NCBI GenBank assembly: GCA_964035545.1 | Contig: OZ037768.1 | Location: 6,480,741-6,544,740 of the forward strand | Direction of reading: 5' to 3' | From: Bugula neritina | Taxonomy: Eukaryota; Animalia; Bryozoa | Length of the DNA: 64,000 bases | Shown: positions 21,079-62,661 of the stretch, in pieces | How the letters are laid out: the number at the start of each line of letters is the position of its first letter | Position numbering within the stretch: the first letter of the stretch is position 1 | Made by a program: the position numbers and the translations under genes | Notes under the pieces: generated by a model | What the model saw: the letters and a program-made list of their open reading frames with translations, nothing else | What the model was told of the DNA's origin: nothing | Databases searched by the model: none

Positions 21079-21339
21079 AGTAATATTAACACTGTGGCCA
21101 ATTTTTCAGCTTAGTCTTTTACTTAGCAAAATATGCAAACAAATGAATAAAACTTTTGCCACTATTGTTTATTAATTTTATACATATATATGTTTGTCAA
21201 TACACAGGCATGATTAGTGAATATTTTTTTATAAAAAATATTTTGGCAATGACTGAAATTAATTTCATATAGTTGTTTTATAGAAAAATATAGAAGAGCA
21301 ATCCAACATAAAAATGTGGGTTTTTATTATATAAATAAG

Positions 21340-25326: not shown

Positions 25327-26199
25327 AACCTTTTCTCCACTAAGTTATTTCAAAAACAAGATTTGTTAGTGAGTGTTGACATTGGGAATGAAACTGGAAG
25401 TGTTGAAGTGTTAATAATATTGGTGGTAAGAATAAACTTTAACCCACCAAAGTTTTGTTGGAACTACTTTGAGCTTGGTAGATTTATTGCCATAGAAGTA
25501 CTAGCGAGGCTTAATATATCTTCAAGGACATAAACAATTATCTTGACAACTGTTAATTGTAACTAAATTCAAATTGTATTATCACCACTCAATCTAATGC
25601 AATACTATTTTTAAACAAAAATCTAACATATTTAAAAACAAATAAAATGACTCAACCAGGCACATGCTGATGTCTAAGCACTGCAAATTATTGTTAAATT
25701 GAGTTTACCAAGTGAAAGTGTAAATAAAAAAATTCAACTTGAAGAGGTTTATTTTACTAAACTAATTTTTATTTTAAAATAATCTAAAGCTAAAAGTAAA
25801 AGTAAATCTAAATAACTGTGTCACAACATAATGATCATTAGTATCATTATGATCTCTAATATTAATTCTTAATGAATTATCCTTGGCATAATTATAATAA
25901 TATTAATTGCTATCCCTCATTTAGTCATTGGCTCATTCACTTCAAGTATTTCAGTAATTGTCTTAATCGCTATAACTATCACTATGAGTGTGACCTGTGA
26001 CTACCACTATTACTATTAAGAATAAGTATAAGTATCACTATCAGTATGACTATCACTATGACTATAAGTATAACTATAACTATAAGTATAAGATTAACTT
26101 TAAGTATAAGTAATTAAGTTAATGTTAGTTAGTTGAACTTAAACTTAAAGTTAATCATTAAGTTAATGACAAGTTGAATGACTTATGAGTGATAAGAAA

Positions 26200-28076: not shown

Positions 28077-31000
28077 ATGTCTGAGTTTGAGAAGAAGAGA
28101 AGGGCAGCTAAAATAGGTGAGTGGACTAAGAATTTCTAGCAGGCTTTACTGTAGTGTTTGATAACAATAGTGAGAGTATAGTTGTTTGTTATCCCATTAG
28201 TTAGCTGTAGCTTTTAGTGTACACAACTTTTTAATTTATTTTCTATAAAAATATCTTATTTACTAAATAATGCACTGTTCACTCGTTCTTTTTATTTCTG
28301 AATCTCAGACTCTTCTATCATATTACTCAAGCTTATAAACTTCATGGGCAGATTTTCTATTAGGGTTGAAAAACTAAATTTATTTGCTATAACTGTAACT
28401 ATGTAGTTTTTGTGACATGAAAACTGCAAAATATTACACTTGCATGCAATTATAATGTGTACTACCATAACAATAGCAGTCACATGAAATATATAATTAC
28501 ACAAAGTATCCATTAGCTTAGATGGCACATCAAACATTTAAATTTATGGTTCATTATTTTTTGGATATGTTGTAGAGGCTGGGCCTACTATCAAGCTTAC
28601 TTCTTCAGGATTCTCAACTCTAGATGTCAGTGTTTATGAAGGGCAGGTGAGTGTTACAAACTTTAGATGTCAGTGTTTATGAAGGGCAGGTGAGTGTTAC
28701 AAACTCCAGATGTCAGTGTTTATGAAGGGCAGGCGAGTGTTACAAACTCTAGATGTCAGTGTTTATGAAGGGCAGGTGAGTGTTACAAACTCTAGATGTC
28801 AGTGTTTATGAAGGGCAGGTGAGTGTTACAAACTCCAGATGTCAGTGTTTATGAAGGGCAGGTGGGTGTTACAAACTCTAGATGTCAGTGTTTATGAAGG
28901 GCAGGTGAGTGTTACAAACTCTAGATGTCAGTGTTTATGAAGGGCAGGTGAGTGTTACAAACTCTAGATGTCAGTGTTTATGAAGGGCAGGTGAGTGTTA
29001 CAAACTCTAGATGTCAGTGTTTATGAAGGGCAGGTGAGTGTTACAAACTCTAGATGTCAGTGTTTATGAAGGGCAGGTGAGTATTACAAACTCTAGATGT
29101 CAGTGTTTATGAAAGGCAGGTGAGTGTTACAAACTCTAGATGTCAGTGTTCATAAATGGCAGGTGAGTATTACAAACTCTAGATGTCAGTGTTTATAAAT
29201 GGCAAGATTGCTGATTTTCAAAAGGCTACAAACAGCTGTTAAAAAAGCTACCGCTAAATTAAAATTCTTAGAACTTAGATTTCTTTGCATGTTCTATTTA
29301 TAAGGATACATTTTTTTACAGTCATTTAACTTAATTTTGTTAATTTTATTATTTAAATCCATTAACTGCTAACACTTTTGTAAATGACTAATCATAAACA
29401 ACAATGAACATTTTTTGCTTGGCTAATGAGCTAAAATATATCTGGTTGTAGGTGCTAACATTTGAATGGAATGAAAAAAGTGGAGAAGGGTTAAATGTTG
29501 AACAGGTATTTGTGAAATATTTATTGCATCCAATGACAACAACAATTTATGTTATACAAATGCATGTATTTGTTTTAAAACTTCAGTTAAAGTTTTTCAA
29601 AGGCTTTGCAGCCACCCTGCTAAAAAGGTTTATGGGTCTATATTCCCGTTATTGAGTTGTAGAATAGTTTTCGATGTTATGACATTAATTACTGAGTTTA
29701 GCTTGCTCTCTCTTGTAGCAGCAATATACCTTACTATAAGCCAACAATTTGTATTTTCCCTTAACTTAATATATTGCAAGTGATAATTCTCAAACCCTTA
29801 TATATTTATTCATAATGTAAGCTTATAGTTACATTGATTGTTGGTATTCATAAATGCTCAATATTAATACATTATGAATGCTTATGTACTTGTCTACCAT
29901 TTTCAACAGATAGTAGCTGTAGAAAATACGAGCAGAACAGTTCCTGGCGGCCATTGTAGTGGTGCCAGATGTAGAAGTGCCACCTACAATGTTCAGTTCA
30001 ATCTTGCTGGTGAATACACATTTACCAGGTAGGTGCATATCTACTGTTTTCCATTAATTTTGTGTAATAAGATGCTTTCAGGACTCAGTGAGTGATGCAG
30101 CTAAATGTGGTGTGTTACTGGTGGTTTAAGTACTTGCTAGTAAAATGAACTCGCTGTAACATATCACTAGTCATGCAATTTGTTTGTTTCTCTATCTCTC
30201 TATATTACCGCCAATATATTATATATTTAATTACTATAATATGCCTTCTACACAATCTTTAGTAGTTGAAACATGGCAGTTTTGAATTATTAGAAATATA
30301 ACATTTAGGCAAGAATGTTTTGCTTTTCTGTTTTTAATGAGATTTTTAGCTTAAAATATAAGTTGTGCTATATTGCTTCTAACTCATCAAGTATGATATT
30401 TTTGTGCTAATGCCTAGTTTTTCAGGATAGTTTGTGGATAAACAGGAACCACTAGATATACATACATACATACATACACACATTTATAGCCTTCATACAC
30501 AGTGCCTATTCACCTATTTTCTTTAGGCTTAGCTTGTAATCAACATGAATTTTATAATGTTGGTGAATTTGGTGGCTAGGCTTTTTACTTCAGTCAATGT
30601 ATTTGGATGACAATGATGATAATAATATTATATAGGAAAGCTTTTCGCATGAACAAATAAATCGAAGGCGTGGCGCGTAGCATTACAATAAGCGTAATAC
30701 AAAAACGCTATTAGCATTAATGCAATCATGAAGCATCGGTGGTTCAGTGGTAGAATTCTCGCCTGCCACGCGGGAGGCCCGGGTTCGATTCCCGGCCGAT
30801 GCATTTTTTGCTTTTCTTAATAGTGAACTGGTGTTCAAGTTTGTTTTACAAAAACACGCATTATTGCTTTTTCTTTATAGTAATGGCTTTAAAAAGAAGG
30901 CTAAACCATTGAACGTCACCGTCACCCCTCGCCCACATTATGATGTAAAAATTTCTGACAATGGATTTGATATGAAGATCATCACCATAGATGAAGGAAA

Positions 31001-34000
31001 TTGGATTAACTTTGTGTGGAGAGAAAAAAACTGCAAAATCCCACATTCAGTTACGCAGCTAGAATTTTGTGATCAGCATTGTGGATTCACTCCAAAAAAG
31101 CAGCGTGGGTTAGTGCAACAATGCCGTTAAACCACCAGTTAGCTACTAAATCTATTTTACCACTCTTTAAGTTTCAAGCTTGGTCAATATGTGAAGATAC
31201 AGTAACTTAGCAGATATTATGAAAAGTTTTGCCTTGACATGTTTTTTGACGCAAGGAGACTAAGTGCTATATAAAATTGATTTGCTTGCCAAAAGTAGTA
31301 TCTAGGCATTTCTTTTAGCCGTATGTAATGTACACCATTGCAGTAAACACGAGAGCTACTGGGGTGGTGTTCTACTCAATGATATGGTTTAGACACGCTA
31401 AAAGATGATTAGAGTGTCAATATGAATACAAGTTGTTAGCCATTTCAGTCTGCGTAGGATCTGCTACTTGCTAGAAGGAGTGCCAGTCAATCGTATCAGT
31501 GATTGTTTGCATTGAACGCTATTGTTAAGCTTATTGATTTTCTTTTGATATGATATTTTATATAAATCTAATCTTTGTAGAATTGTGCCAACACTGAATG
31601 GAAGTTATGAGCAAGAATTCAAGTATGTATACCTACAGAATATATCATTGATGTTTTATTTTATACGGAATACTGTATTGAATATTCACACCATAGTATC
31701 AAATTACCACTTCATGTTGATTATTAAACAAGAGCCTAGTTACACTCTACACATTGAATATTGAAGTACAGAAACTTTTGCACAAACACTGAACAAAACC
31801 CCACAATCCTATCAGAAACATATAGGTTATATAGACTATCATAATCAAGTTTATCTGTTTTTGCTAGAAAAGTTGTGATTAAAACTATCTATGTGCAATA
31901 CTTTAAAAAGTAGCCATATAAACAGTTGAATCTAGAAAAGTTACAATGCCAATTGATTTTTTTTATTATGTCTAGACTAATGTATTTAGATCGTTGAGCA
32001 TTTTATGAAACTTTGAACCAATTTTCTTCATATCTTAAAACGAGGATCTATTACACCATCTAAAGCTAAATATTTTTGCTCTATATTTTTGTTTTTCATT
32101 TTGTCAAATTCGTGGGACGATTTTACTGTGTATATATATACCTGCTATGACTCTTTAGGGTTCCTGGTCTATACTACTTTCATACACAAAGTGCTACACC
32201 AGAAGAATCTGGAATTTGCGTGGTGCATGTCAATGAAGTCAACAGGTAAATTATTTTTCAGATTAGAATTTATATTACCTACATCTCATTACTATGGTTG
32301 TCATGCTAATTCTATCCTCTAGTTGATCTGTTTTATTATGTAATCATTGATTTTTTAAATGCAGAGAATACAGAGTTGAAGTAAAGGAGAGGAGGTTTGA
32401 GCCAATGATATTGCTGATTGAACAAGGAGACAAAGTATGGTTCAGCTGGACGTCTACCAAAGACTCTCACTGCGTCTATCAGATAACACCACCAGATCCG
32501 GACCATCCGGCAGCGGATGAGTATAGAGCGGTGAGCTGCTGCATACGCTGCCAATAAAAATTCTACTTATGGATTATGTTGAAAAGATTTGATTACATTT
32601 TAAGCCAAAGAACACAGTAATGATTGAACAGTTTTTAGTCATGTCAATAAAATAACTTTGTAAGATATTAGATTCATTTATCTACTAACTTGTTAATAAC
32701 TTAAATGCTGGATTGTGTTATACTAATCATGTTAATATTATAGTTTCATTTACTAACTTAAGATTTTAAATTTGGTTATTTACTAATATCAGTAAAGTTT
32801 CTAATAACTTGAATTTACATTGGCTTGTGTGATGCTTCAGGTGAGAGGTGGGTTCGCATGGCATGAGCCAAGTACGACAGGCCTGGTAGCCCATCAGTTC
32901 ACTCAACCTGGAGTCTACTATTACACTGACAGAGACTTCTCTTATGCTGCTGACTACATGGGCACCATTATAGTCAAACCTAAACAAAGAGAGCACTTTG
33001 TCAATGTGCAGCCTAATGCATACACACCTGGTATGTTCTCTACTTTCTAATTTTGAGAAAAAGCTTAGCTACCCATTATTAAAGTTTAAATTTGTCTGTT
33101 ATAATATAGTGCTGGTTCTTAATTTCAATGCCAGCATTTAGTTACTAGAGGTAATGCACACTCACTAGGATTGTATGTAGTTTGATGAGAAAAAGTTCTT
33201 ATATGAATTGTAACATATTTGTTGTTGACTATAATGCTATTGCTATATTATATTGATGTAGCTATGTTATTTATTTTAATGCTATTGCTATGTATTGGTA
33301 TAGCTATACTAAATGCACAAACTGGAGACAGAATATGGTGGCAATGGACCCCAAAGGAAATGGCGAAAGCTTTTGCCATCCAGCAGCTTGAAAGTTGTTT
33401 AAGTTTATCAGCTAAAGACAATAGAGATCATAAATGTGAAGGTATAGTGGGTTTACTTTAGTTCTTGTAGGTTGAACTGTTGATGAGTTTCTCAGCAGGT
33501 AAAATTCTATTTGTTGAGACTCATCAGTGTTACTGTAAGAACTATGTGGTTAGGATATTTATTATAGAACTCAAATTGATTGGCAATAGTCTAGAAGTAA
33601 CCTCCCAAAAAGTGCTCAAAAAATTGGCTTATTACACTTTACTAGGTGGCCACTCAAAAAAAGTTGTTTTTAGATCAGAATTTTGTGCTGATTCTGAATC
33701 TACAAATTCTAGAATTCTATCTCTACCCAAACTCAAGTTATTGCAAAAAACAAATCGACATCTTAAATGGGTGATAAAAAGAAATGTGGATTGTGCAAAA
33801 TAGTATCCAATTTTAACAAGCTATCTTGAAGAAAAAATATTTGCCTCTTACTTAAAATTCTATGCTGTTACTGAATTTAAAGACTGCAAGACGCTATCTC
33901 AAATTAAAACCAAGTTGCTTATATAAACGTATATGTTTGTTATGAATCGCCATATTGCATGCGGCATATGCATGCAGAATAATTGTATGACCAAGCTATT

Positions 34001-37000: not shown

Positions 37001-40000
37001 AATGGAGAATTTAAAATCTCTCCTGTTTGTTTTCTTTGAACAGCCTAAATATTCTGTCATAACATATATATACTAGTTCTGTGTTTCATATATTCTAGGC
37101 AACTGTAAAGGAATGACTCAGAAGCAGATGGTGCAGTTCTGTAAAGCTGGAATGCAGACAACAGTAGTAAACTCTGTGGGGCTTTATCACTATAAGATAC
37201 CAGAAGTTGTGAACCATCTTCCCACTTCCTCTATTGTAGTGCAATCTGGTGCAAGGGTAAGTTAATTCGGTACTATGACACATTTCTTGTTAAATTGTAC
37301 TCCGTTATATTTATGGCATGTATTGTAGAAAATAAAATTGTAGTGTTGAAAATTTTATTATAGTGCATAGCTTTTAGCTTTAAATATCTTTAAAAAAAAT
37401 ATTTTCTTTGCTTTTGTAAGCATTTTGACTTTACATATTGTTACCTATTACTACCATTCCTAAATTTGTAGTGACAATTAAAAAGATTTGCTATTAAAAT
37501 TTGTAGGTTGCTGTATTTTTTGTGTTACTGCACTCAGATCATATCTTATTTAAATGATGACCTGGTAGCAAAATATTCTGCATATTACCACTACTGCAAA
37601 CTGGGGTCATTTTTACAATTCATCAATAAAATTAAAACTTGGAGCTGCTATTTTTCATTATTTATTAGTTTGAAATTGCTAGAGATTGGCAAGCCAACCT
37701 TTTAAGTGTAAGTATACTATAACATTTTTCATCTATTGTAGAATGTCACAGTAAGGGTGGATGACAGTGGGTTCCATCCTCGCTCTATCACTGTCACCCC
37801 CAACAGTCGAGTTTGGTTTATCTGGCAGTCCGCTGAGAAACATCACAATATAAGACAAGTAACCTATCATGGGACTCCAGTCAAAAATGGTTTCTGCAGT
37901 GGGGCACCCAGACAGGCCCCCTCCGCCTTCATGCATCAGTTTAGCACCCCGGGGGTGTTTTATTTTGTCAGGTAAGCAATGATTTATTTCGTTATTTGGT
38001 TAGAATTTAAAAGGTTATTTGAGAATATTTGTCTTATTCACCATAGAATCAGTTTTTTATACAGTTTTCGTGATATTTTCTTTTCAGTAAACTGTGTTTT
38101 TATCATGTTATAGTCTGACAAAGTAATACTCTAATTTCATTTACTACTTGTGATATGCAGGTAAAAAAAGAGAAAATAACAAGAGTATAAAATTATCATA
38201 TGCATAAAGCCAAGTTTATTCTACTTAAAGCTACTATATATACATGTACTGTAGCAAATCGCTGCCGAGACTGTTTGGTGCTGTGGTGGTAGCCACACAA
38301 CCTAAAGTGCACACAGTGGATGTGCGGGGAAGTATCAAACCAGACCCTCTGCTCATACAAGAGAATGATGTAGTTGCCTGGAGCTTCAATGAGCAGAAGA
38401 ACTATGATGTCACGCAGATTCATACGGTGAAGCAGGTCTTGAGTCCACAGAGCAGGATGGTGCCACCCAGGTGAGTAGATGAAGATTACATGTAGCTTAC
38501 CTCACAAGTGTGTCTGCTTATATCTCTTGGTATATTATATTACTATTATGCAATGCAGCTGCCTACGTCTCATTGTTTCAATCAAGAAACTCTAATTGAT
38601 TGATTTAGCTAAACGTTCAATTCACTTGTATTGTTTTACACTACAATAGATTTTAATTTGGTTAGTGTTTAGGGCAGTGTTGTGGAGTATGTCCATTTTT
38701 CCAAGAATTCTAGCTTGTATTTCTTCATTTATAAACATGTAATTGAAACCTATTATGAAAATTTCAGGCTGTTGATGAACCGAACATTTGTTGACTTTGG
38801 AATGTTTCACTTCACCAGCAACTCCATGATTGACAAACGGAATCGAGGCTCTTCCACTTCTCTGGTGGAAGTTGATGATCTCAGAATTAGCAGTGTTATT
38901 GTTGATGAACACAGAGGTATTCTTCAGCTTATTAAATTAGCTAACACTTAATTGCATATATTAACTGTTGTCTATAATTCTCTTGCAGAACTTGTCTGTC
39001 AACTCCTTCTAAATGGTTAAACTACATTTGTTTAGATTGCAAGTGTGTGAGACTAGACTCTAACGGTTTTCACCCAAGAAATGTAACGATAAAGAAAGGC
39101 CAAAGTGTCCTGTGGACATGGAAGAATGAACATGAACAACCTCACAATATTATCCATGTCAACTCTCCCGATAGTGAGGTATGGGTGAATTCATTAAACT
39201 GTGCATTAGAATGTTTTCCATTATAATCCTATTTTGTTTACTTCCAGTTAGATTGTATAGTGACTAATTTATTACAGTATTGTAATATTCATTATGCTAC
39301 TAGATCTTTCATGAGTTTGTTTCTTCAATAATATTTAATAATTTATAGGTTCACATGTTTCCTTTAGCTCTTTATGCCTTTAAATTGAACTAGTAATTAT
39401 TTAAAAATTTTTTTACATAAACCAGTCATTTGTTTGCATTTGTTAGAGTCACGGCAGTGATGGGTTTGTCTACCCATCTCAATCGGTAAGCTTGAAACAT
39501 TTCCGTTTAATGGATACAATATGTTATTCATTTGCACTTTAAATAGTTTGAAAAACATAAGTATGTTTTTTAATTTTTGAAAATGCCTTTTACAGAGATA
39601 GTGCATGTTGTAAAACTATAGCACACTCATATCAATTTCACAAACCTTATCGGGATTTTTCAATTAGCACGCCTTTGATTATTTTGTGAAGCAATTTTGT
39701 TGTCAGCATTCTATTATATTGACTGTTCACTAAGTGCACAATCTTATTTTCTGATACCATCATTTTTGCTAATCTAGCAAAGATGTTGCATGAGCAAGCA
39801 ATATATGCTATTCACTGATTTTAGGCCCCGTTGAGTGTGGTGCATGGTAAGAACGCTTTCAACAGCGGCAAAGTGGTGAAGCACAATTCATACATGTTCA
39901 CTTTTGATGATGATGGGCATTACTGTGTAGCCTCAGAAGGGGCTCCAGGTTACGCTGGCTCTGTAAACGTACTCGGCTCTGGTGAGTATAATTGATGCAT

Positions 40001-49000: not shown

Positions 49001-52000
49001 CGCACCGAACTGCTCAACCAAGTCACCATTCAGTGGAGTGCTGCTAAAGCTAATACTATACCTGTAGCAGGTTATAAGGTGCTACTCAACGGCTCCTCAG
49101 ACTTCACTATGAATGGCCAGCCGGCCTCAGTAGCTCTACCTGCCGACTGCATGCAGACTACTATAGACAATCTGGTACCAGGAAGAACTGTGAAGGTATG
49201 TCTGGTGGTAACGTGCTCAATGATTCATAGCATGTAGGGTATGTTTGTGTGTTTTCATGTTTTGCTATACTTGTTCTTGAAAAAAACCAATTTATTTTCC
49301 AAAATGTAGAATTTGCTTGTTCAATACTTGGTCGTGATTCAAGTGTTACTTATAAAAATTTAGAACTATCGTATTGCCTCAGAAACAAATTTGGAGGGTA
49401 TTAAACTATGAAGTCAAGCAAGCTGAAAAGTTATTCTATAAAATAATATTTCTAATAAACGAATGTTTTAAATATGTAGATTCAAGTTATTGCCACTACC
49501 AACCACCCGGTTGGCGACAGCAGACCTTCCAACACTCTCTCTGTCACATGTCCTGTCAGACCAGAATCACCTCTTATTGTCAATCAGCCGAGTTACAAGA
49601 AGGGGGTGGTAGTGATTGCATGGGATGCCCCCAAACAATCTATAGTTGAGTCTGCGGGTCACCCTGCTAACATAACCTACTACAGCATCTATGTAGACGG
49701 GGTGTGGCATGGAGAGATCAAGGCAAACCATGCTTCTGATACAAATGGGTAAATATACTTGTAGTGTAGAACTCGGTCTCTATTATCTATTATCATACAT
49801 ACTTGGTGAAAGTCACAAGACACGCTATTTTATAGAATCATTTAAACTTTGTGTTTGTATCATATTCTACTATTATAGTGTGTAAATGTCTTTTTATCAC
49901 TATGTTTGTATCATATTCTACTATTACAATGCTTAGACTTTATTCTGTTTGTAATCTCTTCTATAGCTATCAATACTACCTGAATGACCTGAAGCCTGGT
50001 GTCTCCTATGACATCAGTGTAAAGTCCATATCCGGGCAGAAGGTTCCGGAAGGAAGTAGCATATACTGTCTCTGTGAAAGCCTGTTGTCCAACACTGTGC
50101 CTGTGACATGTGCCGCTCCACCTGCGTCCCCACACATCTACATCGAGGGCATGTCCCCTCAAGGTCAGTAACTTGGGTGTTTATTTAGGTTTTTGTTTGA
50201 ATGTTACACAATATCATCAAAAATCAACATGAATTTAAAAGTTGACATTGTTTTTTCAAAGAAGCATTGATTATGATTTATTAAAATCATTTTTGATCAA
50301 TGCATTACTATTGCAGTTTAACAATTTCTATCCCAGCAGTATGTTACTAAAATATGTTCTTATTTGTTGTTTATTTTTTATAGATTTAATAATTATTATT
50401 AACTGCATAATTATTTTTGGAAGTCACTTAATGGTTATGCATCACTTTCAGGCATCGACATAACGTGGGAGGTCCCTCAGCAATACGGTGACGCTGTGTT
50501 ATCTGGCTATCAGCTGATGAAGAATGACTCAATATATGGCTCCACTATTCCTCCAGAAGTGACCAGCATGAACATCAGAGACATAGCCTTAGGGGACGAA
50601 GTCAAACTGCAGATCATTGCTTTAACAGAGCACCCTGTTGGTGGTGTAGATAGCTCTAAGCAAGGTCATGGCAGATATGCAGAGTGTAAACCTGGACCTA
50701 AACTCTCTCTACAAGTTAGTGCAACTCCCACTGTTCGGGATTAGATAGTATATAGTATAATATTATACTCTAATTTTACACTGTACTGTATAAATATTAT
50801 AATCTAATGTTAGATATAAAAGCTCACTGTTGGTATGTAAGCATCTTATTAGGCTGAGTGCTTAGATGTAAAACATGTCTCAGCAAAGCCAAGTTATACA
50901 TATATTACAGTATAATAATTTTTACAAAAAATTTATCAAAATTATTAGCAAATGACTTATTAACTCAAAGCTTTAAAATGATTTAAATTAGCATATATAT
51001 ATGCAATATAATTAAATATATGCATTTTAATATAATATCACATTACTATATTATATTATATATTATATTGCTATATTATATATGCTGTTAGTATACAGGA
51101 CTAGTGTCACCACCCAGTAAGGTTTGGACTGAAAAGGTGACAGGTCATCAAGTATTACTCGTGTGGAAACACAAGTTCAGCAGACAGAGGAATCATTTCC
51201 AGCCTCCAGACAGCTACCAAGTTACCTGGTGGCCGGGAGAAATAGCTCAAGGTTGGTATATCATTTACTAGCAGTTTAGATGGAAATCATAATTATTTTG
51301 ATGTTGCACAGCGTGGAGGCTGAAACACTTTATTTATAAAAAAAAACAGATAAAAATTTAAGGATTTGCACTTTCTCATATAACTACTCAATATTAAAAG
51401 TGTAATGTAATTGTTATATTAATCGATAATATTTATATCTTCAGTTGTTGTATATATGTGTTAGCTACTCAACAGAAATTCTTATAGCAAAAATATATTT
51501 AATTTATTGATCTCGTTGCATAATGTCTTGTGTATTTACATAATCTTTTTGAACAACACAACATTTTATAGCATACTTACTATTTGAAGTATAAGAACTA
51601 ACACTGCTTCTTCAGCATAATGTGTTGACGTTGCGTGTTTGTAGGATATATCAACAGTTGCTCAACAACTGATGACCACCTGTTGATACAAGATCTGATA
51701 CCCAACACTGCCTACACCATGATAGTGGAGGCGAGGAGAAAACAACACTATGTAGCCCTTGATGGTATGTCTTTATATACCGTATAACAAGATATGGAGA
51801 TGACATGCTGGAGGGGGGGGGGGTGGCTTGTGCATTGTTACTTCACATATGATTCAATTGTTAGGGAGGAACACTTTGCAGCCAGTGAAATAACAACTAA
51901 CTTTGTAATCTTCTTCATTTTGCCCTGCATTAAAACAGTCTAAACTCTAAATCTATTGTTTACCAAGTATGAAAGAAGAGGAATGAAAAAAAAAGTATTA

Positions 52001-55000
52001 TTGTAGACCACACTTGTTGTCACATATGCTTGTTATGTTAATAGAAATGGAAGACCAGTCTAGAGAACAAGTAAACCGTCACTTCATAATCTCCGCCAAA
52101 TCTAAGAAGCTAACTGTTCTTACTGGGCAACCCCCAGAGCCACCCTCAAACCTGGGAGTACTTGCTAGCACCTGCCATAGCCTTCAAATTGGCTGGGATC
52201 CACCCAGAGAAAGAGGAGTTGAAGTTAAACGTAAGTTTAATCTTCTGCTTATCCAATATCTTTTCATTATTTTATAGCAGAAATTTTAGTCTACTGAGTC
52301 ATAACATATTTAAAAAAACACAAATGTTTAAAATATTATAAGTCAGTAATTGGGTAACTATTTAAAAATTTTTTAGGTGATTAACTTAAACTTTTGTGCA
52401 AACTTTGGGTACTTCAATTTTGACTAGTGGATAGAATTCGTAGCATAGGAAATGACAACATAAGATTATGTAAAGCATCTGCTTCCCTGTATTACAGTGG
52501 TGAGAGTAGACTGTGTACCTGTGAGTCAGAAAGTCAAGACCCACATATGTGAAGAGTTACTACCCACTGAGACAGTTATCAACCTGCACAACTTGTGTGA
52601 ACACACCGAATACGACATCACCATCACTGCTGTCACCGAGGAGTATTTTGAATCACTTCCTGTCGGCCATGAGTGGAAGAAGGAACGGCAGATTCCGTAT
52701 AGCAATAAAGTGATACCTGATAGTGAATGGCTGCCTAAATCTGTGATTACAGTTAGTACAATAACACTTTACTTAGTTACCTTCACCATTCTCTTCTAGT
52801 ACTCTTCACTTTACTTAGTTACCTTCACCATTTTTTTCTAGTACTTTTTTTAGTCATTGTTATAGTAGCAACCTTTAAGTAAATAAGAAACTTTATTGAA
52901 TACAGATACTAATTAGTGTAATAATGCTTTAACTCTTAACTTGCAGAGATTTTTCATATCAATATATATTGATTTGAATGACTGAGTGTATGATGATGTC
53001 ATATATAGGTCAGAACATCGGGTACTGATCCCCCCACCGACCTTGCACTACAGAAAGTCAGTGATACGTGTGCAGAGCTGAACTGGAGTCCTGCCATAGT
53101 GTTTGGTAACAACCGTCTGCTAAGTTACGTTGTCAGGTGGACCAGACTTGACCCTAATGCCGACAAGGAGAACGAGCACTACATGGAACATCTCAACCTT
53201 CACAAGAAGGAAACGTCTGCTACACTGAAAAACCTCGTCCCTGGTTAGTCATTCTTCGTCCTTGTAATGCGGGTGAAACAGCAATTCACAGCTTTAGCCA
53301 GTAATAATGTCTACTAGTTTAATGTGTTGTCTGTAGGCTTCCAGTACCGAATAGTGGTGGAAGCTGTGGTGAGTGTGAAGACTGCAATAGAGGCACTCAA
53401 TGGTGACGAAGAGAAAAACAGACGAACTACTCACATACCCAGTGTTCCTTTGTTTGTCAGAGCCAGGGCTCCGGTACAGCCTCCCGTAGTGCTTGTTACA
53501 GGTAAACCACTGGTTACAGTTCTACAAAAAAATTTAAGAAAAACAGATGATGCTTACTAAAGAAAATTTTGCGGTTGCATTCACTAACTGCATGAATTTT
53601 GCTTATCTACTTATCACGTTTCGTAATTGCAGAACTTTTGAAGTTCACATTAAATTAATGCTTAGGATAGTGCCTATGGAGTTGATGCTAACCACTAGTT
53701 TGTTATTTTTTGGTTACATCTTAAAGGAAATATTTTGTCAACAGTAAATTACTTGTAAAAATGATATGTTGTGTCACACCTTACTTTATGATATAAAATG
53801 CCCCACAGCAATTAATTGAAGCTATACTGTAATTCTATATCAATGTTTGCATTTCATCAACAAAATTTCCATTATTCTGTTTCATTGTAGTTATTACCTT
53901 TAAAACCTAAGATGTAAAAAAATTATACTTATTTTAGCTTATTTTTAATGTAATGTAATGAAAATGTTTTATTTTCTTTAGGTTATACTCCTTACACTGC
54001 GAACCTGTTCTGGGATAAACCAACTCTCTGCTCGGTAGTGGCTCGAGATGCAGAAGGCTCGCCAGTTTATGTGAAGCGGTATTTGGAAGGCTACAGACTG
54101 TACATCAATGCAAAGTTACACATGCAACTGGATAACTCTGCCCAAAGTGTAACCCTTACCAAGTGTAAGCCCGGGAAATCCTATGACGTCAGCTTGGTGG
54201 CCTTGACCTCAACTGAAGCTGCTCGTCGGGAAAAGAAACGAGTGAGTCATCGTACCGAGTCACGATAAGATTATGAATCACTGCGTTTCCAAGCTTACCA
54301 TTATGCAAATGGATTTTTTGCTCGTTGTTGGGGAACAGTTGCATCGAATGAAGCCACAAGCATAAGTTCGTGCAAACCACAACCACAAATTCATCCGTAC
54401 AAGCATCCATTTGCATAACACGAAGCAATGAGAACGCAGTGAATAAAACTATCATTTAAACTTGTATTTCGTGTCTTCAGTATACTAATGTACAAGTACT
54501 ACTGTTAGTATTTAGTTTAGTAATGTTTCATATATGTTATATTCACAGGGACTCAGAGCTGAAGATGACAGTGATGAGTCATTGTCTATGCCAGTAAATG
54601 TGAGTCTGCCTTCAATACAACCCGGTGGTTTGGATAACATAGATGTGAGGTTCGTGGAAGATGTGAACAAAGAGATTGGTAACATCCACGTCAAATGGAA
54701 TACACAGTCACACAATCCTGACATTAAACAATGGAACGTGATATGGTATGAGAGGGATCAGGGAATGCTGCATAAGACAGGCCTGGACCCAGCAACTACC
54801 AGCTGCGTTATTCCTGTGGATAAACGGAAGTGAGTCACGTTTTAGTTTAGTATAAATTAAATAAAGTGTTGTTTACATACTGTTAATTTATAATAGTATA
54901 CCTTCGTTATATAATATTGATATACATTCTTATGAGCCATCATAGTAACCCATATGCACTTAAAACTAGAAGACAAAATTTAAAGCCTGAAATTTAAATT

Positions 55001-58000
55001 AGTGCTTGAGTGTTGTTTATTTTCTTTCTGCACCATGAAAGTAGCTGGGGGCCAACATGTTTAGAAATTTATGCTTATTTAGTAAAGACCAAACAACATA
55101 AAACAAGTTTGCTGTGTGTGTGCTCAACAGATATAACACAGTATACTTAATCTTTCTTGTTTTTATTGTAAAGATCAAGGAGGATTCTACTTCCCTGTCC
55201 TGTACGTTATCCCGCTTTGCTTATTTTGTGTTGGTTTTGCAGACGGATATATGAGATTAGTGTGGAGCATGAGCTCTACGGACAAAAGGCACAGCCAGAG
55301 CCTACTCAAAGACTACAGGTCATTGTACCAGGTCCAGTAGATGCACCAGAGATCTTCCTGAAGACAGTGAATGAGAAAGACTTCACCATTGAGTGGGGAG
55401 AACCCCGGTGTTATGGAGGTGTGAGGGTCAAAGGTTACCAACTCTATATGAATGATAAGAAGATTGGGCGTGTCCTCAGATCCACTCACAGGAAGGCTGT
55501 TATACCGTGCCGACCAAATAGGTTAGCTCTCCTCTAAGCCACTATTCCCTACATTTCCCACCTTTATAAATAGAACACTACAACAATGTTATAAAGTAGT
55601 CAATTTATTTGTCACATTTATTTATGTGTCTCTAAACCTTCAAAGCAGATACTATTCATCAGATCCTAACATCAACATCTATTGATAATTAGCTGGTAGT
55701 ACCTCTATATTAAAAGTTTTAGAGTTGTTAGAATGATATTTTATATCAAGAGATGTGCTATCTTGTACTTAGGCAATACAAGCTGTGCATGTATGCTATT
55801 GGCACGGAGTATGGAAACTCTTCTGTATCAAACTCTCTGCTGATAAACACTCCTGGATCTCGGTTCTGTGCCGGTCAGCTGCTAGACAGCGCAATTGTAG
55901 ACTTTGAGTCATGGGAGGCTTCAGATCAAACAGATCTTAAGGTAATTATTATTTACAAACATATGCTGCATTTATTTAATAACTTTGGTGAGTATATTTT
56001 TAAGGATAACTGCTATTTCATATAACTTATAGCAAGAATTTGTTTTAATATAATGTGTTTTAGTAACATACAACCCACATGCACATTAAAATATATTTTC
56101 CAAGATACTTATTTTAGTATTATTAGAAGTCACCATAAAAATTTTAGTCTACAGTATGTTGCACAATCATGCATAACACTATTTCATATTTTGTAATAAA
56201 GTTGTGCACATAACTTGTGTATATTAGACGGTTTGTAGCAGTAATTTTACAAATTAGGCCTTAGATCTATGATCTAAACCATTAAGTAGAATTTTGTAAT
56301 CAATCTAAAACAAATGATGCAGCAAGAATGGTTCACATAGTGTTAACTTTCAATAATAACTACAAGAAACTCACCAAATAGCTCCTTTATAGCGTGGTTA
56401 AATGATACACTTTTAGGAGTTGTCTCTGCCTAACAAAAATTAAATACTAAAATGCATGTCATTTAAAATAAATTTTAATAATAATGTTATTGTTATAGTT
56501 ATTATATTTATAAAAATTTAACGAAAAAATTATAGCAAAATTTCATTACATTTAAAAAAGAATTTCATGATTTTTAAATAATACACACCATTTCATATTA
56601 GTAATTTGTTTGATATAGTCGCAATTCGTAGCTACCCAACTCATACTTACCTGGCACAGGGGCATCCGTGATCATGAAGGCGGATCCCCCAGGAAGAGGC
56701 CTTACCATTGCACTTCGGTTTGGTTGACGCCTGCGATTATCCCAAATGTGGATAACTCGGGTGCGTAATTTTTGGTAGTGGGGGACTGCGTTCGCGCTAT
56801 CCCCTAATAATTAAAGAAAGTAATAATATAAAAACAAACCACTAGTGGTTTTGCTGGTGAAACTACTAGTCAAGCAAAACCAAGGTTAGTTTCTTTAACT
56901 TAGTAAAGGCCAATGATAATGACAGAGAGATCATTCAGCCGTAATTGTGCCTTTGCCACAATAGAAAACCCCAAACGACCCTTTCTGTCAAGGGTTCTCA
57001 CAAGGATAGTGATTACAAACTCACGTGAAATCTAAAGAATATCTCTACATAAAGATTGACACGCTCTCCACCAATTATTGTCATGAATAAGACATTAAAA
57101 ACTAGTCAATTATTATACAGTGTAAGGAACAAGCACGGTGGGAATTAGGAAAGGTAATAAGATACAAATCTATTTCATACATAATAGTAGTGATCACACA
57201 ATTAATTTGGCCTTTGTGGTTTCCATGATAAGCAGCATGTATTTAGTTGAGATCTTAATGGCTAAATTACGTTATTAACTTGGCAGGTACGATCTAGCCA
57301 GGTGACGGACACCTCTATGAAGATAGATTGGGTATATGAAAACAAGCCAAGGGGCATACATGCATATAAGGTTCTTTGGAGTTGTTCAACCCAGCCCAAG
57401 GTTTGTAGAACAGATTTCTAACAAAAGAAATAATTAAATAATATTTTTGCAAAAAGCTGTAAGTTCACACTTCAAAGCAGCTACATGCTAGATTTTTATT
57501 TAATTTCTTTAGGTTATCACTAATAACATTTATTAATAATAATTTTCTGATGTTTATAATTCCCAGGACCGAGAAGTTCGAGTAGATACAGATGAAGCAG
57601 AACACAGTCTAGTGCTCCAAAAGCTGTTTCCTGGCATCACTCATTACATAAAGGTGTTTGCTATTGGAGACAGTGACATCATTGTTGAAAAGTCTAAGCA
57701 GATAATAGTGCAAACCAGTGCTCCACCTGATGTGCCGGTGATAGGTATAAGGTATGTGTTATATCATTAAAAAAATACTCTCGCATCTACTCGGTTCCTT
57801 TAGGTACACAGTGATTAAATAAATTATCTTCTGAGCCAAATGATTGAGAGCTAACAAACAAACCTTTGAGCTATGCTGTCTAGTCGCGTGTTTTATTTTA
57901 TTATGCAGAGCATGCAACTTGAAGTATATTTCTATCCAATGGGAGAGGCCCAGATGCTATGGAAGTGCACACATTACTGGCTACAGAGTATACGTTGACG

Positions 58001-61000
58001 GTATTTGCGAGTCTGTGAACGGCCCAGAAGAAATGACTTATAACTACACAACAGGAAAGTTCTGTACTGAATACTCTTTTCAAGTACAAGCCATAACCGA
58101 CAATGATTTAGCCAGTAAACCTTCGGATCCTTTGCTGGTGAAATGGCCCGGCGTTATACCCCCAACTGTGAGACAGATAGCCTCAGAGACAAACAGTTCA
58201 CTCAAGCTATGCTGGGAGATTCCTTACTGTACTGAGGGCATCAAGATCAAACACTACAAGGTTTGTCTTAGCTTGATAATGTATCTTACGCCATCTTGAA
58301 TATTGTAGTTATATCTTATTATTGTGATTGTTTGAAAGGTAGCTGTTTTATATAACTGTGCAAATAGTGAAATACTTGTTCATTCAACCAGTTTGTTGCA
58401 TTTCGTCTCGCAGGTTGTGTGTCGAGAAGTTGACACTCAGAAAATTGTACAAACCGTGTGTCCCATTCACCCCGAGACAACCCAGGCTGAGCTATACAAT
58501 GTGAGGAAGGGCAACTACCAAGTCTACTTGGAAATCTATGTGAGTGTTTGTGGGTACATGTATTGGTGATATATATTTACAGCTGGGCTCATAATATATA
58601 CAAATACTTTTATGACTGGTTTATTGTATTTGTTTTGGACTTTTGGTATGCAATTTAATGGGAAATCATATATTATATTCCTTAAATGTTTATTCTGTAG
58701 CTTCACGGCAATTCTGACATATTCCGGTCGGACGCTGTGACAGTGGAGCCTTTCATATTCCCGGATCCTCCTGCTATCACGGTCACAGTTGTGGGACTAG
58801 AAGAGAGGAGACAACTTGAGAAAATAACCAGTGATCTTGTCAACAAAAGATACAGGTAACTGGGAAGGAGTTGTAAGACTACCCGAATATTAGAACACAA
58901 TGTGCTTCTTAAATAGCATAAGTCTTTCATTATAGTAGATAGGATTGCCTGCAGTTTGAAGTTGCCTTTCCTAATTGCAAATTAATCTTCAGGTAGTCTT
59001 TTTGAAGCTGCAATTACTTTTGAAATAGAAAATGTGAATAATTAGAATTTCAGATGAATTTCTTGACTATGTTGTAAGAAGCATAATGATAATGATATAT
59101 AAACAAAGTTATATGTTGTGACATGTTAAAATATATAGCCTAGAATGCAAATCCTCACCACAACTAGGCATGTTGGCATAAAATTTAGCCTCAGCATATT
59201 ATGTTTTTGCAATAAGCACTTCTAACTTGTATGTATATATCTGGCAGTATATGATGACTCATTTACATTATATTATTATATGATGCATATATTATATTTC
59301 CATCTACATATTACATTCAGTTACCTATTACCATGTATTATTGAATGTAATACGGTATTAAGAGATGCATATGTGTTTTACGATAAAGGTTGATCAGTGT
59401 ACTCGCTGATGCTGGCAAAAATGAAGGTGTGATTCCGGGCTACAAGTTCAAGCGTACAGATGTTGTGCATGCTCAGGCTAAGGCCAAGGACTACTTAATG
59501 CAAGTAGACGGCATGCTAGATGATTGCTTTAGATCCTTGGCTAACTACACAGGTATATTTGAACCTGCTCAACTTATTTTTATTACATGTGGTAAAGTTT
59601 TAATCCATATTAGAATAGTATTTATGTCATGAAGATATAAAAGTGGAGATGGTATTATTGATGCCTATAATGTTTATTGAATACTGAAGGTTGGTTATTG
59701 ATGATACAGACAAAGCAAAAGATAAAGATTATTTGTGTTGTACTGTAGCTACTAAGTCCACTCCAATGCCACTATTTTAATTCATTATTTACTTATACAC
59801 ATAATAATGCAAATAGTGTCCACCACGCCTATAAAACTTGAGGTGTGTAAGCTAAATTTCTGGTTAATAACTGCTTGTTTTGAAGTAGGAAATACTATTG
59901 CATCTACTTTGGTATGCAAAAGTAATGAGAAAAAGTAATAAAGTCAGTTAATTATAGCCATTAGCAACCACTAGATATTCTTCCTGACCAATAGTTTGTT
60001 CGTAACCAAAATTAATTATGGGAGTTGTCTCCCCTCGAAGTTATTTTCTTATTGAAGTGCTGTTAACTTGTAGCATGCGTTTTTAAATTATGGAATTTTT
60101 TGTACAAGTAAAATAATTTGTGCTTTTGATGCAGATTTGCAAGTAGTATTTCTCATATGTATCATAATATAACATCCACTATTTAGCACACCAGTTTACT
60201 TATTATTTAAAAGCTAGTAGTATATAATGGGATGTTTAGTACTGGTTAATGGACTGTGTGGAAGACCTACATCGGAGTATGAATTCATTAGCTCTGGGGA
60301 AAGTCCCCGGATCCAGACCAGCGAGTGGTGTGCCGGCTATCTGTACCAGCCAGCTGTCACTCAGACCTTGCAAGGGCCATGACTGTCTCAGACAAGAGCC
60401 TGTTTGATGCAGCTGGTGTTCATCGCAGCACAGTTATGTAGGGTGTGTCATGTACATAACCTCAATGGGGCTTACTCTCTGCTCAGTCCTTTTACCAAAA
60501 TTTTTATTAATATTTCTAGGTAGCCTATTGGTTCATATCAGTTGGACAAATACTCAGTCTAGTCGAGATGTGTCGGTTAGTGGGTATCGTGTGCTGGTGG
60601 ACGGTAAACAGTTCGGAACAACTCTACATTCTGGTGTTAATAATGTCCGAATCAAGCTAAACCTAGAGTCACATGTACATAGAATCTCAATGGTGACCGT
60701 GTCGGCCAAACCCTATGGTATAAGCGGAGAGTCTAATACTGTCGATGTTTTAACGACTCCCTTCAGACCATTTGTAGCCTTCTGCTATCAAAATCTACAC
60801 CAGCAAGACTCTAGGTTTGTTGATTTATTGTGTTTATCTCATGTTCAAATTTTAAGTGACTGAAAAGTGGCATTGCTTTTAAGTTTTATAAAAATGCAAA
60901 AGATTGTATAGCGTGTTATTATTATTATGTTATTATTTATATATACTAATACAAATAATATTCCAGGTGGCCAAGTGCAGGTTCCTGCCGATATGATTCT

Positions 61001-62661
61001 GCCGTGGACTATGAGAGGCAGCAGACGAAGATGAAACTCTCTCACAAGGGTCTGCTGCACAAACAGCTCTCACCTCCACAAGTGAATGTTTTGGACGTGT
61101 TTGAATGTGAATTCAAACGACTGCTGCCTCCTGGTGGCCCTGAAAGACCCACCATTCTTTTGTTCTGGAGCAGCTGGTGCTTGTCTTCACAAAGAGTAAT
61201 GGAATACATGTTCAAGTTTTCTCAGTTCAATAATCACAAGGTACACACATTAGATCTTTGTGACAGGCAACTGGGCACACATTGCAGCTGCCAGTTGGCT
61301 GTTGAAATAGCTTTTACTATTTTATTTTTGATTGCCTGCTACATAGATCATGCAGTTTACATTACATATGAATAATATACTTGTAAGATATTTTGATTAG
61401 GTTTAGTCAGCTATAACTCCTTGTAACATCTCTTGTTGTGTTATAGTATGACTTTGTGTCACTCGCTTGTGGTCTCGATGTCACCATCCCAGAAGAAAGA
61501 GCTGATCTTGTACACCGCATAACCAGTAATGGATGGAATGACGAACACGCCATGTGGCATGTAACTGACCAGTCAGCATCAACTGTTGTTGCTGCACAGA
61601 CCTTCATACAGCAGAACCTGATTGGTGTGTTTCATCACTTTGTTCATAGGCTAAACTGAGTAACGATTCCAAGACATGCCTATATTTTCATGTGTCCATT
61701 TTTATATAATATGATGTATTGTGTACAAAGTAGCTGTAACTATAATTTTTTATAGGTAAAGATGGCAAAAAGATCAAGAATGTAGTAAACGGCCCTCAAA
61801 TAGCATTTGGCAACACTTCTGATCTGCTGGGAATACCTGGTGTACCAACCATTGTTGTCATACACCCATCAAGTAAGTTCATATTATTGGTATTATAGTG
61901 TACACCTACACCATATGCTGATAACCAATTCGAAATACTAATCTGATTTGTTAAAATATAACTGAAGCAATAAAATAAAATGTTTCTTTTCTATTTATTT
62001 TAGTATTAATGCGTTTAGTTAGTTGTATGTAGATACTTTTCATTAATTTATTTTTATTTTCTAATGACTCTGTTTTCATTGAAGTTTTTTCAAGTTGGTG
62101 GCTACTTCTCAAATTTTTAATAATCAACTTGTATCTATTCATTACACACATGATTTCTCTTTAGATTATATAGCATGGATGGGAACTTTTTGTACTTATG
62201 ACCAGAGCACATTTGACATCTTCATTGAGCACACTCTATCAGAGTGTTTAGGACTAACTTGTTCCATGGAAAGCTGTGAACAATGCCAAGCAAATGCTGA
62301 CCTTTACGGTAACTATGTTATCACACTCTCTTATGCCTACAAATTTCATTCACATCATAATACTACTGCAACCTATTGAGTGCATTTGCATGTTACAGGG
62401 CTGCTAACTAATTCTATTGGGCCAAACAACGGTAAAAGGCAAACCTCCGGTCCACCTTTAGTGATACCAACCACTGAGAAGCATATATATGGAGGCAGGC
62501 AACATCCTGCGCTAAAGAGGCCGCAATCCTCCAAACTGGCTAAAAGACCTGCTCAGACGAAAGGTGTTCGAAGTAGACCACACTCTGCCACATCTAGCAA
62601 AGGCAGCATATCTATTGCCAAACGTCCATATTCAGCAAAAAGTTCAGACAGAGAAATTTAA
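28077..62661 (+). CDS. Giant uncharacterised multidomain protein: 7 cupredoxin-like repeats, chitobiase/beta-hexosaminidase C-terminal-like domain, ~16 FN3 domains with a low-complexity insert, thioredoxin-like domain and basic tail (roughly 3000-3500 aa, estimate)
   Basis: ATG at 28077 has an upstream in-frame stop. About 50 GT-AG exons join in phase where checked. Repeated units have the form VxxxGFxPxxITIxxGxxVxWxW...HNI...GFxSG...FxxPGVYYF (28576-39981). IECATEGAEIYFTIDGNTP lies at ~41300. Many units read PxxP...W...GYxVxxNG...LxPGxxYxIxV. PTILLFWSSWCLSS...GIPGVPTIVVI spans 61148-61862. Stop at 62659-62661. Confidence 0.88.
28616..29205 (+). repeat. 43-bp minisatellite, ~13.7 copies, spanning the donor site of coding exon 2
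   Basis: The unit agatgtcagtgtttatgaagggcaggtgagtgttacaaactct starts at 28622 and recurs every 43 bp up to 29181. Confidence 0.97.
30733..30803 (+). tRNA. tRNA-Gly(GCC), intronic
   Basis: 71 nt GCATCGGTGGTTCAGTGGTAGAATTCTCGCCTGCCACGCGGGAGGCCCGGGTTCGATTCCCGGCCGATGCA. It has a paired acceptor stem, A and B boxes, and anticodon GCC. Confidence 0.98.
30804..30809 (+). terminator. Pol III oligo-T terminator of the tRNA-Gly
   Basis: TTTTTT immediately follows the discriminator base. Confidence 0.85.
33587..36822 (-). mobile_element. Decayed Academ-type DNA transposon, intronic
   Basis: Perfect 19-bp TIR TAGTCTAGAAGTAACCTCC with imperfect extension (ATTACACT..GGTGGCCAC). The 3-bp TSD is CAA (33584-33586 and 36823-36825). 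Minus-strand remnants read DHEEADTQTLLHA..VIIKSQDTDV, FHALTGCDST, LPPTKDELNFRVKRADYQAAI and a Cys-rich end. TAG termini, a 3-bp TSD and these motifs fit Academ. Confidence 0.85.
34340..35690 (-). pseudogene. Fragmented Academ transposase C-terminal half (XPG-like nuclease region and Cys-rich tail)
   Basis: ORF-track fragments 35448-35693, 34585-34833 and 34195-34413, plus FHALTGCDS at ~34880-34910, broken by stops and frameshifts. Confidence 0.75.
47682..47722 (+). other. Predicted G-quadruplex (seven G-tracts of 4 or more)
   Basis: ggggggaggggttggggtaggggtagggggaggggtagggg, ending 58 nt before the acceptor at 47780. Confidence 0.8.
56582..56602 (+). promoter_or_regulatory. Candidate snRNA proximal sequence element (PSE)
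   Basis: CACCATTTCATATTAG sits at about -57 to -42 from the U1 start, the expected PSE position, and loosely resembles TCACC-type PSEs. Confidence 0.4.
56643..56806 (+). ncRNA. RNU1: U1 spliceosomal snRNA, intronic
   Basis: 5' ATACTTACCTGG, loop I GATCATGAAG (70K site), loop II ATTGCAC (U1A site), Sm site AATTTTTGG and terminal stem GGGGACTGCGTTCGCGCTATCCCC. Length ~164 nt. Confidence 0.97.

Follow-up and report, generated by a model that had tools for sequence, protein, structure and literature searches.

In this study, a 64,000-nt stretch of the genome of the bryozoan Bugula neritina (contig OZ037768.1, positions 6,480,741 to 6,544,740; hereafter the window) was found to carry a multi-exon gene on the + strand at 28077-62661, which is a real, single, spliced gene for an intracellular protein of approximately 3,000–3,600 residues. 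Its architecture, together with the domain counts, had been proposed in an original prediction made from the letters alone and was borne out by profile searches on orthologues: 7 cupredoxin-like repeats, a CHB_HEX_C domain, 2 FN3 units, a disordered linker, 14 further FN3 units, a thioredoxin-like domain, and a basic tail. The best explanation is a conserved holozoan gene family, so far without a name, of which this gene is the only orthologue in the genome. The family would encode a rod-like scaffold inside the cell, tethered by a lipid in most species, with a cupredoxin head that lacks copper, a linker adjustable by splicing, and a far end that is monothiol, thioredoxin-like, and phosphorylatable. 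Its location is possibly in cilia. A probability of about 0.6 is assigned to this explanation as a whole.

The window is AT-rich (approximately 33% GC) and has eukaryotic exon-intron structure. A bacterial-style list of open reading frames contained short frames only, except for one 510-aa frame at 44632-46164, and stop-to-stop translation of the + strand from 28 to 63 kb gave a series of short open frames with recognizable domain fragments. Exons were searched singly, and full-length analyses were carried out on orthologues from the databases instead of on a joined protein from the window. In tblastn, the orthologues from Ptychodera (P0001, 3697 aa), Elysia (P0096, 3427 aa), and Mya (P0124, 3478 aa) matched the window collinearly from 30.8 to 62.6 kb, the thioredoxin exons and the tail included. 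The gene was found to be single-copy in the 216-Mb assembly. Sequencing runs containing the window sequence were all of marine origin and comprised runs of the organism itself and metagenomes of symbionts, biofilm, and seawater.

An exhaustive HMMER search with the exon at 37742-37969 returned 90 proteins, led by proteins of 3,000–3,700 aa with 4–6 matched stretches each. The leading matches were uncharacterized or hypothetical proteins of Ptychodera, Anneissia, Diadema, Bulinus, Elysia, Patella, Argonauta, Intoshia, and Macrostomum; word searches added Glandiceps, Acanthaster, Asterias, Lytechinus, S. purpuratus (LOC577931), Antedon, Owenia, Capitella, Dimorphilus, Lineus, and about 20 molluscs. 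About 35 orthologue models were found in Ambulacraria and Spiralia, none bearing a functional name, and collinear relatives of 3,000–4,000 aa were present in hemichordates, echinoderms, molluscs, annelids, a nemertean, a flatworm, and an orthonectid. The window gene was about equally similar to the homologues of molluscs, annelids, and the nemertean, which fits a spiralian outside these phyla, and head identity between deuterostomes and protostomes was about 40%. Every orthologue with a database name was labelled "uncharacterized" or "hypothetical", and a full-text literature search with 12 orthologue locus IDs and word combinations, which covered text outside supplementary tables, returned no relevant paper. 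The earlier statement that no characterized protein has this architecture thus held. The family is new to the literature, is built from known folds, and stands in the databases as unnamed predictions only.

A choanoflagellate homologue was also found in Didymoeca costata (P0062). This complete 1,646-aa transcript product was collinear with the animal heads over about 800 aa, CHB_HEX_C included (E 7e-36); it starts with MGSGSS, has a WW domain above the Pfam cut-off, and ends in a thioredoxin-like segment with an intact WCTPC. A word search from this protein returned itself alone. The head alignment and the MGSGSS start indicate that the head and the lipid-anchor start predate animals, and homology between the choanoflagellate and animal tails is plausible. 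Weak but significant sequence similarity was also observed to bacterial tandem-repeat proteins.

With local profile hidden Markov models (HMMs) built on 31 orthologues, 28 sequences had 7 cupredoxin-like repeats, no more and no fewer, and parts of each of the 7 were located in the window. Repeat 1 is spread over exons 28576-28646, 29452-29505, and ~29895-30028, as judged from splice sites, phase 0 junctions, and a repeat HMM match at 29904-30023. The exons of repeats 2, 3, and the first half of 4 lie within 30765-33446 (HMM matches at 30945-31082, 32372-32524, 32841-32924, and 33306-33407, with orthologue tblastn), and those of the second half of repeat 4 and of repeats 5, 6, and 7 within 37149-39989. 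Repeat 5 is nearly whole in one exon, 37742-37969 (HMM match 37745-37966, E 4e-30). The CHB_HEX_C_1/Fn3_assoc beta-sandwich exons follow at 41188-41816, supported by orthologue tblastn; exon 41182-41436 matched Pfam CHB_HEX_C_1 (PF13290, E 7.5e-8, 32.6 bits against a cut-off of 22) and Fn3_assoc (PF13287, E 3.2e-5, 24.4 bits against 23).

The FN3 units number 16 (2 + 14) by local HMM. FN3-1 and FN3-2 occupy exons within 42072-44450, FN3-3 to FN3-15 those within 48239-58898 (FN3 HMM and collinear tblastn), and FN3-16, together with the start of a conserved Cys/His-rich connector, 60447-60860 (FN3 HMM E 5e-10; tblastn). Pfam fn3 exceeded its cut-off of 25 bits in two exons, 53009-53245 and 57844-58296 (31.9 and 38.1 bits; E 1.6e-7 and 1.8e-9), and stayed below it in others; in orthologues, fn3 was found with E values of 7.5e-60 and 1.9e-80. 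The thioredoxin-like domain was assigned by tblastn and translations to exons 60962-61318, 61447-61647, ~61746-61895, and ~62164-62308, which carry the motifs FWSSWCLSS and GVPT (cis-Pro), and the basic tail with the stop codon lies at 62399-62661 (17 K+R against 3 D+E). An in-frame stop at 62377-62379 between the last thioredoxin exon and the tail must be removed by a 90-nt intron with a good acceptor, most likely 62309-62398, and the conserved tail motifs downstream of that stop indicate that the tail is coding.

Only weak Pfam matches to Copper-bind, Cupredoxin_1, and Thioredoxin_8 were given by the window exons (18.1 bits against a cut-off of 21.2 for Copper-bind in an intron-split domain). 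The weakness of the single-exon matches for cupredoxin, FN3, and thioredoxin is explained by introns splitting the domains, and whole orthologues passed the cut-offs for Cupredoxin_1 (P0001, 34.5 bits against 27) and Copper-bind (P0004, 29.7 against 21.2). Sequence searches against the PDB gave no match for the head and, for the tail, sub-threshold thioredoxin matches and a chance match of the disordered part to snake-venom proteases. For repeat 5, an AlphaFold2 model from 26 orthologues had a pLDDT of 91.9 and matched cupredoxins in Foldseek with probability 1.0; the best match was a Nitrosopumilus cupredoxin (5fc9; TM 0.78/0.84, rmsd 1.4 Å), followed by plastocyanins, pseudoazurins, and amicyanins. 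The model of the 231-aa C-terminal domain of orthologues (pLDDT 82.8, pTM 0.82) also reached probability 1.0, the listed matches being almost all TlpA, ResA, CcmG, StoA, DsbF, and Sco, with target-normalized TM scores of 0.6–0.76.

The protein had been proposed to be intracellular and elongated, with neither signal peptide nor transmembrane helix. No hydrophobic 19-mer or signal-like start was found in 11 orthologues checked. Among 35 orthologue models, 26 begin with MG[T/S/A/N][G/A][A/S]S or a near variant, and 5 more carry the motif internally behind a predicted upstream extension; the MGxGAS start recurs in independent annotations of more than 20 species, from several animal phyla and the choanoflagellate. 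Starts of the MG[T/S/A]GAS type fit the consensus for N-myristoylation. These features and the WW domain of the choanoflagellate homologue support the intracellular placement, from which we infer that the protein is in the cytoplasm; the elongated shape was likewise supported.

Two short motifs hint at the cilium. In myristoylated proteins, an MG start with small residues at positions 3–5 and Ser/Thr at 6 is reported to bind UNC119 with high affinity and to be set free specifically by ARL3, at the cilium or at the immune synapse; the GNAT1 cargo peptide is Myr-GAGASAEEK (PMC8246649). The orthologue starts fit this high-affinity rule at residues 3–5. The family shares MG followed by small residues with the UNC119 cargoes GNAT1, NPHP3, cystin, and LCK, and several orthologues begin MGAGAS like GNAT1; otherwise it has no sequence resemblance to them, the motif is absent from the first exon proposed for the window gene, and lipidation and UNC119 binding are predictions from the motif. 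At the other end, 30 of 31 orthologues have 1–4 RPxS sites in the basic tail, and three sites, RPQSS, RPHSA, and RPYSA, were matched in the tail of the window. In orthologues, RPx[ST][PATS] occurs 17.9 times per 1000 aa in the last 130 residues and 0.24 times elsewhere, a 75-fold difference in density. The substrate consensus of CILK1/ICK is R-P-X-S/T-P/A/T/S (PMC6678984), so that the tail sites are candidate sites for CILK1/MAK. A ciliary location, hinted at by these UNC119-cargo and CILK1/MAK-type motifs, is possible but short of probable.

Under the favoured explanation, the N-terminal lipid would in most species hold the protein on the inner face of a membrane, the cupredoxin-like head next to it would serve as a binding module and not as an electron carrier, the FN3 array would form a long, stiff spacer, and the thioredoxin-like end with the phosphorylatable tail would be a regulated distal end. 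The likeliest site would be the cilium or the ciliary base, which is the weakest step.

Several observations weigh against this explanation. No MG start of the myristoylation type (ATG-GGN) was found in the window from 25.3 to 31 kb, and the lipid anchor may be absent in B. neritina or encoded in some other place. Predictions from short motifs are weak, and the sequences in which the motifs were counted are related and hence not independent. No localization, expression, or proteomic data were found for the family. The animal-tail HMM gave no significant match to the choanoflagellate C-terminus, and the thioredoxin-like domain scores below the Pfam cut-offs, which is why such a domain is missing from every database entry of the family. 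Orthologues were not found in chordates, ecdysozoans, or cnidarians, a provisional result from searches with one 76-aa domain or shared words; such an absence would be unusual for a core ciliary component.

Such a restricted distribution would fit better with a lineage-restricted structure than with core ciliary machinery, and the protein could be a non-ciliary intracellular scaffold of the cell cortex, junction, synapse, or muscle, the two motifs being coincidental or serving other membranes. The immune synapse is a further destination of high-affinity UNC119 cargo, low-affinity cargo is delivered to other membranes (PMC8246649), and several FN3 units match the RIM-BP Ig-like/FN3 model below threshold. 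With titin, twitchin, obscurin, and the RIM-binding proteins the family shares a long intracellular tandem FN3 array and a disordered, alternatively spliced spacer, whereas its head and tail modules are unlike theirs. Against a non-ciliary scaffold, the two independent motif classes agree in direction, and Ig, kinase, SH3, and PDZ domains are absent from the precomputed Pfam lists; no Ig (I-set), kinase, SH3, or GEF (DH/PH) domain was present in the Pfam scans or in the precomputed list of any orthologue. A sarcomeric giant Ig/FN3 protein was put aside on the lack of Ig, kinase, and GEF modules. A non-ciliary scaffold is rather unlikely on balance.

A more specific version of the ciliary scaffold, in which a pre-metazoan lipid-anchored "ruler" acts at the ciliary membrane, is doubtful. 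In it, UNC119 and ARL3 would deliver the protein through the start of MG and three small residues, the copper-less cupredoxin array would hold it against the membrane, and the sixteen FN3 units with the splice-adjustable disordered linker would reach inward. The rod would end in the monothiol thioredoxin domain, linked to a partner in the axoneme or the cortex by a mixed disulfide that is regulated, and the CILK1/MAK-type tail sites would control the protein. The head (cupredoxin repeats and CHB_HEX_C) and the TlpA-like tail would have been of bacterial origin, before the animal/choanoflagellate split, with loss later in chordates and ecdysozoans.

The head had been described as metal- or ligand-binding, and a metal-binding role was not supported. 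The Cys-His-Met loop of type-1 copper sites was absent from the consensus of each of the 7 repeats (28 orthologues). Animal repeats keep at most the first ligand His, the HN motif being retained in repeats 5 and 7; the Cys position is occupied by Ile, Ser, Asp, Thr, or Ala, and in the model of repeat 5 a short tight hairpin replaces the ligand loop. A bacterial relative with 12 Copper-bind domains (P0028) keeps the ligand set H...YYCTPH...M (H...C-x2-H-x7-M). The loss of these ligands makes a blue-copper function very unlikely, and a copper enzyme was put aside on this basis. Type-1 copper proteins (plastocyanin, pseudoazurin, and amicyanin; PF00127/PF13473) and bacterial multi-repeat members of the plastocyanin family share the beta-sandwich fold with the giant protein and, in some of its repeats, the first ligand His (HN motif), but the giant protein is eukaryotic and cytoplasmic, lacks the Cys-His-Met loop, and has its repeats fused to FN3 units and a thioredoxin fold.

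In the tail domain, a CxxS motif (FW-T-x-W-C-L-x-S; WCL[SAP]S) was present in 25 of 26 aligned animal sequences and reads WCLSS in the window; the Dimorphilus domain has lost the active-site Cys. The cis-Pro loop GVPT has an invariant P192 and is GVPT in the window, and in alignment A1 C115 and H145 were invariant and C87 nearly so. The redox-fold tail of the original prediction is upheld as a TlpA/ResA-like fold, while classical oxidoreductase activity is doubtful in a monothiol CxxS variant. The periplasmic thiol-disulfide oxidoreductases TlpA, ResA, and CcmG share with it the thioredoxin fold with extra TlpA-type elements or insertions, the FWxxWC context, and the GVPT loop. They differ in that the domain in the giant protein is CxxS and not CxxC in animals, has no membrane anchor or signal peptide of its own, scores below the Pfam gathering thresholds, and is the C-terminal module of a protein of approximately 3,500 aa. 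Between FN3-16 and this domain, the connector mentioned above was observed, PFxFYCxHxxHxK...GCCKYxDS (A1 columns 1–30; window ~60800-61010), with C7, H12, and C24 nearly invariant and lower model confidence; it may be a small metal-binding knuckle.

A working redox machine, with copper or another metal bound in the cupredoxin repeats for electron transfer and the thioredoxin-like domain servicing them, in the way that the CuA cupredoxin domain of CoxB and the chaperone ScoI are reduced by TlpA in bacteria, is very unlikely. The top structural matches of the tail do include TlpA in mixed disulfides with ScoI and cytochrome oxidase subunit II, and the retained HN motifs, the conserved C115, H145, and C87, and the WCTPC of the choanoflagellate homologue would also suit it. 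Opposed to these are the replaced copper loop in all seven repeat consensuses, with a tight hairpin in repeat 5, the CxxS of animal tails, with no cysteine in Dimorphilus, and a cytoplasmic, myristoylated setting in which no blue copper protein is known.

The CHB_HEX_C and Fn3_assoc domains are characteristic of enzymes secreted by bacteria. Their presence, the frequency of long FN3 arrays outside cells, and the extracellular location of most proteins with tandem cupredoxin, CHB_HEX_C, and FN3 domains raise the alternative of an adhesion or matrix protein outside the cell or on its surface, with wrong N-termini in the gene models. Outside the holozoans, the closest relatives are multi-cupredoxin proteins of bacteria that also have PKD domains; one is annotated "choice-of-anchor Q". 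An extracellular protein is nevertheless highly improbable, given the 11 orthologues with neither signal peptide nor hydrophobic segment, the same MGxGAS start in independent annotations across phyla, the WW domain in the choanoflagellate protein, and the basic tail with kinase-type sites.

The linker between FN3-2 and FN3-3 is poorly conserved and was the likeliest place for a split into two genes; therefore, contigs from sequencing runs were placed on 43000-48999. Run X1 behaved as DNA, with evenly covered introns, and runs X2, X4, and X14 behaved as RNA. The RNA contigs had GT..AG joints 43911>44197 and 44450>44654 in the exons of FN3-1 and FN3-2, 44747>47133, 47166>47321, and 47462>47779 in the linker, and 47941>48239, 48412>48593, and 48710>48875 leading into the exons of FN3-3 onward. 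Joint 44747>47133 was seen in X4, and the loose end of an X2 contig equals the first 8 nt of the exon at 47133; a loose end in X14 matches an exon ending near 42203, joined to 43058. Hand-checked phases showed the RNA-supported chain to be in frame throughout, from ~42.2 to 49.0 kb. These overlapping contigs indicate that the FN3-2 and FN3-3 exons are linked in RNA, through several contigs and not one molecule, and with the collinear tblastn matches and the single copy they bear out the prediction of one gene. That the model wrongly merges a gene for the cupredoxin head with an adjacent gene for the FN3 and thioredoxin parts is hardly credible: the linker sequence is not conserved and no RNA contig covers 44.8-47.0 kb, but contigs splice 44747 to 47133 and onward, and the order is the same within a single protein in more than 30 independent annotations.

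The linker was predicted as a Ser/Pro-rich stretch of approximately 600 aa. In all the RNA contigs observed (X2, X4, and X14), the large Ser/Pro-rich exon ends after its first 94 nt (44654-44747, donor AAG|GTATAA) and is followed by three further linker exons at 47133-47166, 47321-47462, and 47779-47941; the remaining 1413 nt (471 codons, 44748-46160) are skipped via the in-frame donor at 44747. The Ser/Pro-rich frame has 513 open codons in AT-rich DNA, for which a chance of approximately 1e-13 was estimated from base composition, and a GC content of 0.44 against ~0.33 nearby. The stop of this frame coincides in part with a strong donor, GT|GTAAGC at 46160/46161, of exactly the same phase as the donor at 44747. 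Starfish RefSeq isoforms differ at the equivalent place, by 348 aa in Acanthaster and 445 aa in Asterias. We conclude that long and short linker isoforms exist, the short form alone appearing in RNA contigs and the long form, on which the predicted length depends, being deduced from the open frame and the in-phase donor at 46160. Given the starfish isoforms at the same position, linker length may be a conserved regulated feature. In the same 6 kb, run X1, which has the same species label, differed from the window at well over 100 positions (40 listed and 103 more) and had several small indels, and sequence diversity between individuals or haplotypes is high.

The putative first coding exon (MSEFEKKRRAAKI plus 1 nt) lies at 28077-28116, with a donor GTGAGT at 28117 and a stop codon in frame 3 codons upstream of the ATG. 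This exon, predicted from sequence alone, does not have the usual MGxGAS start of the family. Its donor is phase-compatible with exon 2 (28576-28646), the junction of exon 2 with exon 3 (29452-29505) is of phase 0, and the start of repeat 1 is reproduced. Upstream frames beginning MG...S (MGCAKSK at 4109, and one at 7626) were rejected as the missing start; they lie beyond two other genes, and that at 4109 is without a usable in-phase donor. The frame at 4109-4165 has a start of the myristoylation/palmitoylation type, lies 24 kb upstream of the giant gene, and was not assigned to it.

A 43-bp minisatellite of 13.7 copies (28616-29204, + strand; Tandem Repeats Finder, 96% matches, score 1087) begins inside exon 2. 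Each copy duplicates the 3′-terminal 31 nt of exon 2 together with the donor CAG|GTGAGT, so that the productive donor is followed by a row of near-copy donors, most of them intact. Because the period is not divisible by 3 and read-through beyond the first donor meets a stop after 11 codons, splicing from a later donor would be expected to leave the message truncated or degraded.

Two neighbours upstream were recognized by visual inspection of translations alone: a multi-exon C2H2 zinc-finger gene at 16400-21100 (+) and an acyl-CoA-dehydrogenase-like gene at 21880-25350 (-). These indicate that the giant gene begins after ~25.4 kb. Since the 5′ end of the acyl-CoA-dehydrogenase-like gene is turned toward that of the giant gene, the AT-rich DNA between them (26% GC at 26-28 kb) may be a promoter region common to both. 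Intronic open frames starting SIGGSVVEFSPATREARVRFPADA and GSVVEY, at 30732-30800 and 38673-38700, resemble interspersed repeats and are possibly copies of a tRNA-derived SINE.

The family is large, old, and well conserved, from a choanoflagellate to Ambulacraria and Spiralia, yet it is unnamed and has no Pfam architecture entry for its tail. It combines three uncommon features: 1) an intracellular tandem cupredoxin-fold array without a copper site; 2) a single-cysteine TlpA-type thioredoxin fold at the far end of an FN3 rod; and 3) a deeply conserved myristoylation start on a protein of approximately 3,500 residues. If the ciliary location is true, the family would add a lineage-restricted structural part to the cilia of animals with ciliated larvae; if it is false, the family would be a clean case of old redox folds reused as scaffolding.

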